From positions 1-64,000 of the forward strand of contig JAADVB010000052.1 in the NCBI GenBank assembly GCA_023334545.1: DNA of 64,000 nucleotides, in the 5' to 3' direction. The stretch's first letter is position 1. Each line of letters begins with the position of its first letter. The translations under genes and the position numbers were made by a program. Shown here piece after piece: positions 39,464 through 44,911 of the stretch. The stretch is from Salisapilia sapeloensis CBS 127946. Lineage: Eukaryota; Protista; Oomycota. Under the pieces are notes generated by a model, which ran no database searches, had not been told where the DNA came from, and was given only the letters and a program-made list of their open reading frames with translations.

Positions 39464-39886
39464 GACGGCCAATATCAACTCGATCAGCCGTTTCCATGCG
39501 AGAGAGTTTCATCAAGTCTAAATAAAGTCCACCTTGCCTTTAAGTACCATTGTCCTAATTTTCGAAGAGGACCGATCCTTCCTTTTTCTGACCACCATCC
39601 TCTCTCCCATGCCAACGTCATCCAGCCCTGATGGATGATCCTACCGCCACGCCTGTCATTTTAAAAAGCAACGCCAGCGACAACAAGACTTGCGCTCGTG
39701 GACGCCTTCATCGAGTCGAACTTGAATATCGCATTTTTCTTAGACTCTCTTTCTTTGCGTCAATCGTCGATCGTGACGTACGAATCGGCCGAGAGCTTAT
39801 TTTCCACTTTCCGCAGCCAGAGACGATTCTTTCTTCAGCGACAAGCGTTTGAAGAAGGTCACAAAGATATTCGCTAGACAGTGATC

Positions 39887-40441
39887 ATGAGCAAGCAGCA
39901 GAACCAGCCATCGGTGGCGCAGCAACTCTACGCCACGTGCGGCAAGGAGATCGAGGCGTTCTGTTTTCACGAGGCCGAGCTGGCCAGAGTCAACTACGAG
40001 ACGCAGCAAGAGACCTTGAATGCAAAGCAGACGCTGTACGACTGCATGGCTGAGCACACAGATGAGCTCGCGAGAGACTGCATCAACGTAGTACTCAGTG
40101 CCATCGTCCAGAACGAGAAGACACACTCAACCGGTGCAACAGATGCGCCTGCTCAGCTCGATGACGACGACTCGGTAGAGATTACTATCCACTATCTACG
40201 GCACCACGCGAAAGACCACGTGGACTCTAGTGTCGGAGGAACCGCCGCCGTCCAGCAGTATGATGCAGCAAAGGGGACGACTGGATCGGATGGCTTTCCG
40301 TATCCATACTTTGCTGGGGCGCTCATTACGCCCTTCTTCCTCCTCGGACTCTTCGTATCACTAGGACACGTACGAGCGTGGTTCCGACGTCGAAGCCAAA
40401 TGCGGATCGAAACGAGCAAATTGTATCAACCGGTGAACTGA
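39887..40441 (+). CDS. Small membrane protein with a GLG1/Cys-rich-FGFR-like repeat (5' end uncertain)
   Basis: LYATCGKEIEAFC...LYDCMAEHTDELARDC cysteine spacing, then TM FAGALITPFFLLGLFVSLG followed by RRR. Confidence 0.55.
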   Translation: MSKQQNQPSVAQQLYATCGKEIEAFCFHEAELARVNYETQQETLNAKQTLYDCMAEHTDELARDCINVVLSAIVQNEKTHSTGATDAPAQLDDDDSVEITIHYLRHHAKDHVDSSVGGTAAVQQYDAAKGTTGSDGFPYPYFAGALITPFFLLGLFVSLGHVRAWFRRRSQMRIETSKLYQPVN

Positions 40442-40659: not shown

Positions 40660-43053
40660 ATGAGTGATGCGGTTCCTTCACGAGCATCCAACCGAGCCTC
40701 TAGCAAGGAAAAGGTGGCTCCATTGTCCAAACTTTTCTCGCCACGGTTATCCAAGGCATCTCGGCCGTCTTTGACTCCAAAGGCCCAACGATCCTCCGTC
40801 TTTGGCGAGCTTAGGAGGACTTTGTCAGGCAGCATGCTTCAACGTCAAAGTCAATCATCCAGTGCCAACCAGGAAAAGCAGCATCAATTAGTTGAAACGA
40901 AAGAAGGTCTAGTCAAGTCACTGAAAGAAGCGTTTGAAGCTAGTATCTGTCTACTGGATGAGATCGAAGATAAGAAACTCCTGTCAGTTCGGTTTGGGGG
41001 TGAGCTACGTGGTTTACTAGGCAAGGCCCAAGACGAGTTTCTGGCTTATGAAGATGACTTTCAGCAGAACCAGAACGAAGAAGGTGTTTCGATAGCTCTA
41101 CAGAACCTGGCTGCTTCAATGATGCAGATAGAGCCCATCGTCCAAAAACTGAAGTCGACAAACTATTTCGTTAACAAAAAGTTTAAGAAGGAGGTGCTCT
41201 TCGCCTTCCAGGAGATTAACACCATGTACATGTCGCTTTTCATGGAACTGTCGATGGCCATGGCCAAACATTCAGGTCTGGAGCTTCCTCTTCCAACTTC
41301 CCGATTGATCCGAGACGCTGACATGCAAACTCCAAAATCCGCTGAGGAGTATTGCCTCGAAGGCCATCAGTACTACTTCGGGCATGACCGAGCACAAGAC
41401 AAGGAAAAAGCCTTTGGCGCATACAAAGTGAATTTTTATTTTAGATTATCTCTTTATGCTTGAACTAACTTTTGCTGTAGGAAGCTGCTGCTTTGGGCAG
41501 TATCGATGCAATGGTATGTTTGGGAAAAATGTACCTGGCTGGAGATGGCGTGGAGAAAGACATGAAATTTGCTCAAGACTGGCTAGAAGACGCAGTGCGA
41601 CACGGAAGTATCGAGTCTTGCTATGCTCTTGGTGGTCTCTTGGTAGGCAATTGAAACAACTAGAGGAGATGCTTACATATATTACTCACTACTGCTGACG
41701 TAGTTGGAGCTGGCTCAACACCAGGATGACCAGATCAAGCGGCAGGAACTCCATGTCATGGCTGCTGCTAGACTCACGCATGCCGCTGAAAATGGACATC
41801 GACAAGCTCAATATAATCTAGGTACTACTTCTTTTACAAAGGTATTGACTACATCTTGACACCTGCAGTCCACAGGAAGTATTTACGAAGACGGACGAGC
41901 TGGAAGCAAGGATCTAGACAAAGCAATGTCCTGGTATCGAAAGGCAGCCGACAAAGGCCACACGAGAGCCGAATCTAGTCTTGGCAGACTTCTTCTCGAA
42001 GGCGATCCCGCCATTCGTAACTCAGCTCACGCCATCCACTTCCTCCAGCGTGCTGCCACCAAGGTCTTCCCTATAGTGCTCTCTCTCTCTGTAGATAGTA
42101 ATCAGCTCACTTTAGCACGAGAATCTAGGGCGATAGTAGAGCTCAACTGTACTTGGGGAATGTATATCGCAATGGGACCGGTGTTTCCGTCGACATTGAC
42201 CATGCCGTCGCCTACTATCGCAAAGTAAGTGGAAACTTTCTCATGCCAAATGACCATGCTCATCATCGCTTCATTGTAGGCTTCGGAAGGCGGAGAGCTT
42301 GAAGCCAAACTTCAGCTTGCTAAGGTACTCGTAAGCGCCTATGCCAATGGTCCTTCCATCCAAATACACAGTAGTGAAGATCGACATGAAGAAGCTTTGC
42401 AACTTCTCCTCACTGCTGCTCGAGGAGGTTTGTCCGAGGCATACTTTTGTCTTGGGGATGTTTTTGATAACGGGGTCTTCGTCAGCGATAAAGCTGCAGC
42501 GCTTGGCTTTTACATGAAAGCAGCTTCATCTACTCCTGTACGCCTTTCGATACCAATTAACAAAGTTACCATACGTGTAACATCTATCTAGTGCCATGTG
42601 CAAGCAGCAGTTCGAGCAGCAGATATCCATTACGCCAATTTAGACAAACGAAAAGCTCATCACTTCTACTCACTTGCTGCAACTGCCAACGACCCTCATG
42701 CACTCAACGCGCTTGGTAAAAGTTTTCTCCACCCAAAAGCATACTTGTATTTCACCTGTCTACGCTAGGGCTCATGTACGAAGATGGCGAGGGGTGTGAG
42801 CATAACTTCCAAAGAGCTGCCGAGTGCTTCCGCCAGGCAGCAGACTTACACCACGCCCATGCTCACTTCAATCTTGGCTGTCTCTACGCCCATGGCAAAG
42901 GTGTCCTCAGGAGCAAAGACGCAGCCCAGCATCACTTCCTCAAAGTACATTCCACCACGCGTATGCTCCAGGCACTAGTTGCTAATGTCCTAATAGGCAC
43001 ATGAGCTAGGGTACGCTCTCGCCGTTCCTTTCCTCGACGCTTCACACGCATAG
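40660..43053 (+). CDS. SEL1-repeat protein with N-terminal helical (MLKL-like) domain, multi-exon
   Basis: Repeated SEL1 units (AMSWYRKAADKGHTRAESSLG, AAECFRQAADLHHAHAHFNLGCLYAHGKGV) across short exons. Exon 1 is helical. Confidence 0.82.
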
Positions 43054-43178: not shown

Positions 43179-44911
43179 CTAATCCAAATTCCGAGCAGCG
43201 AACTTGGTTTCGTCCATGTACTCGACCGACACAGTCCGGTTGGCGAATCCTCGGCCATGGAGCTCCGCCGCAGCCGCCTGCGCCGCCGTCTTGTCCGCAA
43301 ATCCCACGAACACCTATCGTCTGCATGAGTAAAAGGTATGCTATACTGCCCTATAGAAACGTACCTTGCCGACGCCCCTCGTGTGTCCGTCTTTCGAGCG
43401 AGGCATCTCCAGCGCTTGCACTCGTCCGAATCGTTCGCACTCCGTCTTGATGTCGTCCATAATGTCCGCATACTCCTCGTCGTCGTTCAGCTCATCGTCC
43501 AGGACCATGTCTAGCAGCACAAGCACCTTGCTAGGTGTTCCTTTCGGGATGCCAGTGCCGGAAATGCCTGCCATCGACATCGTCTGCAGTGCTGCCTGGG
43601 ACGGGTCGAGTCCGTTGAGAGCTCCGCCAGGCGCAGGACCGGCCGCCATCGCCGCTGCCGTGTCCTGGGCAGAGGCTCGACGCACCGTCAGCGTCTTGTC
43701 GCCGACGGTCATATTGTCCAGTCCGGCGCACGCGACATCCGTGACGCTTTCGTCAGCGTACTCGCAGAACCCGTATCCCTTTGACGTACCTGTACCTAGA
43801 TCCTTGACGAGGTGGAAGGACTTGAGAGGTCCGAACGCCTGCAGTAGCTCTTTCACGTCACCATCGCCCAAGTGGTACGGGATGCCACCTACAAACACTT
43901 TTCCAGGTCCGTCTCCGACCGTCGTGGATACGACACCTAAAGCCCCCAAGTTTAGCTCTGGGATGGGACCCAGATCCTTGGGGACAGCAGTCGGGTTGTA
44001 ATCGTTCGGCCGACGCACCTTGACGGGCTGTCCTCGGAACGAGATGCCGTCTAAATTCATACAAGCCGTCGTCAATTCAATCGACTTGAGCTCGACAAAT
44101 GCGAAATGACGTTCCTTATTGATGTAGACGCTAACGACAGCCCCGCCTTCCTGTTTCTCCCCGAGCGCCTTGTCAATCACGTCGTTGAAAAAGTCTGAAA
44201 TCTCCTTCTCTGTCACGTCGTCAATACCACCAACGTACATGCGACGCGCGTGGCGAGTCTGCTGCGACTGTGCGGCGGTAATCGCGTCCGAGATCTGGTT
44301 CTTTGGCTGGAAATATTCACTAGGTAGAAAGGAAGGGTTCGGCGGACCGAACGACGCGGGTCCAACCGCACCCTGCAGCGCCTGCATATTCTGTTCTAAA
44401 ATCGCCTGCGCAGCATACGCTGCCGCATTCTCCTCCGTCACACCTGGGGGATACACGTCAAACATATTCTTCTTTCGCTTCCGTACGATCTTCACGGGAG
44501 ACCCTGAACGAGATCGAGACTTGTGACGACGACTACGACGATGGCGGTCGCGATCACGATCACGGTCGCGACTACGATCGCGATGACGGGAGCGGTGGTG
44601 ACGGGAAGATCGAGATTTACTGCGATCTTGGTCTCGATCACGCCGCTTTTCATCCTTTTCAGACGCGGGCTTGCGCTCCTTGTCGTGCGCAGACTCTGTC
44701 TTCACCTACCATGACATGAATGAGATCAAATACGATAACAAAGTGGATCGAGAAAGTGTACGGGCGCGTCTTCGAATTGTCCCGGAGCAGGTCGCGCCGG
44801 CGCCGACGACGATGGTGGCTCTGACTTTGGCACAGACGGTGCAGGTGCAGCGTTCTGCCGCTGCATCCACGCAGGCATCGTGAGCGCCTTTCCTCGGCCT
44901 CTTCCAGCCAT
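43179..44911 (-). CDS. U2AF2: Splicing factor U2AF large subunit (U2AF65), 3 exons
   Basis: RS domain, QTRHARRMYVG, FAFVELKSIELTTACMNLDGI, RRPNDY, KVFVGGIP, SKGYGFCEY, and a UHM (DIMDDIKTECERFG). Confidence 0.95.

Follow-up and report, generated by a model that had tools for sequence, protein, structure and literature searches.

In the oomycete Salisapilia sapeloensis CBS 127946, a gene on the + strand at positions 40660–43053 of the 64,000-nucleotide (nt) stretch that we analyzed (the window; contig JAADVB010000052.1, assembly GCA_023334545.1) encodes a protein in which a predicted helical bundle of the MLKL type is followed by a long array of SEL1 repeats. Our preferred reading, to which we give a probability of about 0.5, is that this protein is a conserved core scaffold present across oomycetes and that its MLKL-type bundle acts as an interaction or output module. 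An earlier note, made from the sequence alone, had read the gene as a candidate cell-death or immune switch that unites sensor and executioner in one protein. We do not think that the protein is primarily a lethal immune executioner, and any cell-killing role is conjectural. From its N-terminus, the protein consists of a disordered, basic, Ser/Pro-rich leader, a helical bundle of 125 residues, a Pro-rich linker, and approximately 11 SEL1 repeats; all searches and folds that used the window protein were made exon by exon.

The bundle, which comprises four helices and a short "top" helix, spans residues ~81–205 (40900..41274, + strand). The three peptide stretches that the earlier note quoted for a helical domain can all be read when exon 1 (40660–41427) is translated in frame 1. 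Without an alignment, AlphaFold2 produced a poor model of exon 1 (predicted local distance difference test score [pLDDT] of 57), and a Foldseek search with this single-sequence model returned generic bundles only; it was superseded by a model of residues 76–217 based on an alignment of 13 family sequences, which reached a pLDDT of 85 and a predicted template modeling score (pTM) of 0.76. Residues ~81–205 are helical in both models, and in the alignment-based model the helices lie at model positions 6–25, 29–54, 56–79, 82–91 (the short helix), and 98–129. A Foldseek search of this model against the PDB gave no matches with an E value of 0.001 or less; its upper rows contain the MLKL executioner domain (6zvo and 6zz1, probability 0.98–0.99, template modeling score 0.45–0.53) and the coiled-coil (CC) domain of Rx, together with FAT, IncA, and talin bundles. 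In a wide search with VIA-align, MLKL ranked first and second and NRG1.1 fourth, with the Sw-5b SD, Rx, AtMLKL3, and MLA13 also within the top 15. Among structural matches that run end to end, the best are to MLKL executioner domains, the NRG1.1 CC-R domain, the CC domains of Rx, NRC2, and MLA13, and AtMLKL3. Altogether, the MLKL/CC class accounts for 7 of the top 15 representative chains and, in a second look, for 9 of the top 12 entries; only the MLKL and NRG1 matches are both end-to-end and near-gapless, with a root mean square deviation of 2.3–2.5 Å. In an ESM-Atlas language-model search, HeLo was the sole named family among weak neighbors (scores of 0.79–0.80, where scores below 0.9 count as leads only). 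The predicted model is thus an up-down four-helix bundle that can be superposed on solved members of the MLKL_N/HeLo/RPW8-CC class, and the MLKL-like shape proposed in the earlier note is borne out at the level of prediction. We regard the MLKL/CC type as the probable class of this predicted fold, in the sense of fold class only and not of homology.

The bundle defines a small family of conserved proteins. Exon 1 retrieved 18 proteins in a word search, each of them unnamed or annotated as hypothetical, and those with a species name come from Phytophthora and Nothophytophthora at 40–58% identity. A HMMER profile of the bundle found only 31 matches (E value of 0.001 or less) among 1.84 billion representative proteins. 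The named members, all annotated as hypothetical, are from Phytophthora spp., Nothophytophthora, Pythium oligandrum, Pythium insidiosum, Lagenidium giganteum, Albugo laibachii, Thraustotheca clavata, and Aphanomyces spp.; all are oomycetes, including an obligate biotroph (Albugo). Each named species appears to carry a single gene of the family, and the gene is single copy in the window's own 22.4-Mb genome. The fusion of a helical domain to SEL1 repeats described in the earlier note recurs throughout the family: in each of the eight full-length relatives scanned (597–841 aa), the bundle is followed by Sel1 repeats. Of the 125 positions in the bundle, 31 reach at least 95% conservation across the range from Peronosporales to Saprolegniales; 15 of these 31 are polar or charged. 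This pattern points to a conserved surface for specific binding, whether to a partner or to the protein's own SEL1 array. Across 32 members the net charge of the bundle ranges from −4 to +3, and the maximum Kyte–Doolittle mean over 19 residues is 1.13, with no membrane-like segment. Two much more divergent family members were found in Logan assemblies, P0037 (325 aa, E value 3.7e-6) and P0038 (168 aa, E value 3.2e-4). Both retain the core KLRS-x-[RK]-x-GE-[ED]-LR-[DG]-L, and P0037 also retains the first SEL1 repeat; given these two sequences, the range of the family may extend past the sampled oomycetes. In the literature searched, the locus tags of the orthologues are unmentioned, and keyword searches gave no account of a bundle–SEL1 architecture in oomycetes.

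Sequence comparisons did not place the bundle in any known executioner family. Exon 1 matched no Pfam family at an E value of 10 or less, and in a set of 13 family members MLKL_N, HeLo, RPW8, and Rx_N were all unmatched at the same threshold. The gene was not selected when the genome was searched in six frames with PF22215 (MLKL_N) and PF14479 (HeLo), PF14479 being unmatched in both the protein and the genome, and a profile search of the PDB yielded chance matches only (E value above 0.5) with no MLKL among them. The MLKL profile match that the earlier note had proposed to look for was not found. The note's by-eye alignment with human MLKL lacks statistical support, as no Pfam or PDB sequence match to MLKL appears even at E values up to 10; structural superposition places model residues 7–127 on MLKL residues 1–121, which gives roughly the proposed register. 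Weak matches to Pfam TelA (PF05816) in 6 of the 13 members (alignment A1, with P0001–P0012; best E value 0.0058) were set aside as probable noise from helical composition.

The PF22215 search also brought out three other loci in the same genome whose sequences resemble MLKL_N-type domains at an N-terminus, with a top score of 25 bits against a cut-off of 27 bits (E value 1.7e-4). The match in L002 (L002:1462-2424; G000:C445:18245-18595, + strand) lies at the extreme N-terminus of a 320-aa open reading frame (ORF), and L002 had no relatives in a word search. L003 (G000:C490:164-454, − strand), in which a sub-threshold match lies close to the beginning of the frame, and L004 (G000:C227:987-1277, − strand), which also has a sub-threshold match, are near-identical paralogues that both reach past the ends of their contigs. 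Comparison of the family with L002, L003, and L004 by hhalign gave probabilities below 1%; because the profiles of these three loci are thin, this negative result is weak. A fourth candidate, L005 (G000:C820:6796-7023, − strand; 15.9 bits), is probably a chance match, and its long frame resembles the end of a ubiquitin-hydrolase-like protein.

Upstream of the bundle, residues 1–80 (40660..40899) form the leader, as judged by pLDDT and composition. Residues 1–65 have pLDDT values below 50 and are predicted to be disordered, and the first 40 residues carry eight positive and two negative charges. The disorder that the earlier note had proposed for an N-terminal extension thus stands and is joined by conserved short motifs; the inhibitory or cleavable role suggested there stays conjectural. 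The bundle is never N-terminal, being preceded by 80 residues here and by 42–325 residues in relatives, in which leader length varies. Two motifs are kept across oomycete orders in this otherwise variable region. Motif 1 (LFSPRLSK, 40732..40755; hydrophobic-x-[LF]SP[RKT]) was recognized by eye in relatives from Phytophthora, Pythium-like species, Aphanomyces, and Thraustotheca and, judged from its sequence, may be a site of proline-directed phosphorylation. Motif 2 (SVFGELRRTLS, 40795..40827), identified by comparison with relatives, is [ST]xFGx[FIL][RK]R[ST]-like, and P0001, P0010, P0014, and P0015 have FGKFRRS. Both are candidate phosphorylation (kinase) or docking sites. On the other side of the bundle, the linker (41275..41340) is Pro-rich and flexible with a conserved LPLP, as seen in alignments and from its low pLDDT; it reaches up to ~80 aa in relatives. 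The linker is nonhelical, and therefore there is no MLKL-type brace.

The nine-exon gene that encodes these domains is real: its exons sum to 1,947 nt, corresponding to 648 codons and a TAG stop codon at 43051–43053, with phases that add up, and all eight introns (52–65 nt) have canonical GT..AG boundaries. In tblastn searches, the full-length oomycete relatives P0021, P0026, and P0031 are collinear with the gene from ~40864 to ~42947. The first SEL1-like repeat begins at the end of exon 1 (41341..41427) with CLEGHQYYFGH, a block conserved in relatives as CLEAHQYFFGH. Pfam Sel1 (PF08238) matches fall in exon 2 (41481..41642; one repeat, E value 9.9e-05), exon 4 (41876..42063; two repeats, 48.6 bits, E value 9.6e-13), exon 5 (42129..42224; one repeat, 29.7 bits), and exon 8 (42769..42944; two repeats, 47.1 bits); exons 4 and 8 exceed the 30.7-bit cut-off, and the scores of exons 2 and 5 taken alone are sub-threshold. 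Exon 8 is the best-conserved part of the array, with 53–63% identity to P0021, P0026, and P0031. In-frame reading and tblastn add a SEL1-like repeat with an insertion in exon 3 (41704..41821, ending in phase 1), two divergent SEL1-like repeats without a Pfam match of their own in exon 6 (42280..42537), and another divergent repeat in exon 7 (42592..42715, also ending in phase 1), so that ~11 repeats are counted from the exon translations; exon 9 (42997..43053) encodes the last 18 residues and carries the stop codon, as placed by exon structure and tblastn. Full-length relatives have Sel1 scores of 77–154 bits. Among PDB sequences, relative P0031 matches 6deh, 6ok3, and 4bwr at E values of ~1e-30 and SEL1L at 1e-19. 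The array is generic, its nearest PDB relatives being bacterial SEL1 proteins (E values down to 3e-31), followed by SEL1L, LRP2BP, and DELE1.

Two ORFs flank the gene. Upstream, a 186-aa ORF at 39881–40441 (+ strand) with a C-terminal hydrophobic segment stops just 218 nt short of the gene's start codon, a distance that points to a compact genome. The convergent ORF downstream at 43341–44705 (− strand) encodes 454 aa in which an Arg/Ser/Asp-rich N-terminus is followed by RRM-like sequence, resembling by eye a splicing factor of the U2AF large-subunit type.

According to our preferred reading, the SEL1 solenoid would bind one or more partner proteins, and the bundle, whose surface holds many invariant polar residues, would be a module for specific interaction or oligomerization, and possibly for engagement of a membrane, that delivers the output. 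Phosphorylation of the leader or linker motifs may tune the bundle. Our results bear directly on the gene model, the order of the domains, the predicted class of fold, the narrow taxonomic range, the copy number in the window's genome, and the degree of conservation; partner binding, control by the leader, and any membrane activity are inferred. A gene that is single copy, highly conserved, found across oomycetes, and kept even in Albugo is more in keeping with a core cellular function than with a variable immune gene.

In an alternative along the lines of the earlier note, the bundle would be restrained by a SEL1 array that may itself be a ligand sensor, and activation, by removal of the leader or by phosphorylation, would lead to oligomerization, membrane insertion, and death of the cell. 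Several results are in keeping with it. In structure the bundle comes closest to MLKL executioner domains, the NRG1.1 CC-R, CC-NLR bundles, and AtMLKL3, and HeLo appears among the weak language-model neighbors. The order of the bundle ahead of C-terminal repeats is constant in relatives, the leader is disordered with conserved motifs, and the other sub-threshold MLKL_N-like genes in the genome make it probable that this lineage has the fold class. However, known executioner bundles (MLKL, HeLo/HELL, RPW8, and CC-NLR) use, and need, a free N-terminal helix, and here the bundle is never at a free N-terminus. It also has no net basic charge; none of the 13 members matched an executioner family, and the genome's own MLKL_N-like genes gave no match either. 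Finally, extreme conservation and apparent single copy, even in the reduced genome of Albugo, are atypical for immune genes. The MLKL/HeLo/RPW8-type interpretation is thus supported in its predicted fold, its SEL1 fusion, and its disordered leader and is unsupported or weakened as to a profile match, an N-terminal position, and a net basic charge. Because the bundle is internal and near neutral and lacks a sequence signal, and because conservation and copy number are like those of a core gene, the executioner claim is weakened, and we consider this immune-switch explanation unlikely and less likely than that of a core scaffold. A related proposal, in which an MLKL/RPW8-type bundle gated by the SEL1 solenoid and a phospho-regulated leader would form an oomycete lineage-specific effector of regulated death or membrane remodeling, we hold to be quite unlikely.

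It is somewhat unlikely that the likeness to MLKL is geometric only, the bundle then being an unrelated up-down adaptor that binds proteins as FAT, THATCH, talin-rod, or Cbl 4H domains do and sits on a SEL1 scaffold. The FAT and talin bundles among the Foldseek matches recall such adaptors, but the sole matches that are end-to-end and near-gapless are MLKL and NRG1, and the MLKL/CC class is well represented among the top chains and entries in both looks. Very improbable, in our view, is that the basic, acid-poor leader is an organellar (mitochondrial) targeting peptide and the protein a mitochondrial SEL1 factor like DELE1 or COA7. Members with short leaders (the window protein, Aphanomyces, Thraustotheca, and P0027) do begin with Arg/Ser/Ala/Leu-rich, nearly acid-free sequence and are the only ones whose leaders have a presequence-like composition, and DELE1 is among the PDB sequence matches of the SEL1 array (E value 8e-10), but that match is far weaker than those to generic bacterial SEL1 proteins, and Peronosporalean and Pythium gene models carry long acidic N-termini before the conserved motif.

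Oomycetes include major crop and fish pathogens, and to our knowledge their machinery for regulated cell death is essentially uncharacterized. With apparently one gene per species in each oomycete order sampled, and annotation as hypothetical throughout, the family offers a concrete candidate. Were the gated effector of regulated death or membrane remodeling real, oomycetes would provide the first executioner of this design known outside animals, plants, and fungi, as well as one conserved gene through which to approach their cell death. Membrane activity of the bundle would carry the MLKL/HeLo/CC theme of executioners into stramenopiles, together with a novel type of regulatory domain; a bundle inactive on membranes would mean that the fold also serves as a conserved nonlethal interaction module, a reason not to deduce an executioner role from the fold by itself.

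Among known systems, homologs of the MLKL family in the TCDB from Glomeromycotina carry Sel1 repeats, described without a domain map (PMC8778642). This family match probably runs through the kinase-like part, so these proteins are not a true precedent; they are fungal, the likeness is by description only, and no support for relatedness was found. Of the fungal HeLo/HELL bundles (PF14479), HET-s HeLo lies outside the top 50 structural matches. SEL1-repeat scaffolds such as SEL1L/Hrd3, bacterial LpnE/EsiB/Hcp, DELE1, and LRP2BP share the typical SEL1 solenoid that makes up the C-terminal two thirds of the protein and, unlike it, have no MLKL-type bundle before the repeats. The plant bundles compared were those of NRG1.1 CC-R (an RPW8-type CC, 7l7v), Rx (4m70), NRC2 (8xuq), MLA13 (9fyc), and AtMLKL3 (6ka4); in contrast to these plant proteins, the oomycete protein has no NB-ARC/LRR or kinase-like domain, no free N-terminal helix 1, and no sequence similarity to them. 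With the vertebrate MLKL N-terminal executioner domain (the four-helix bundle, 4HB; 6zvo, 6ux8, 2msv, and 4btf), identity is 6–10% with no profile match. The oomycete bundle differs from that domain in its internal position behind a leader of 42–325 aa and in its near-neutral net charge, a Pro-rich linker takes the place of the brace helices and the SEL1 array that of the pseudokinase, and the oomycete family is far more conserved among its orthologues than vertebrate MLKL is.
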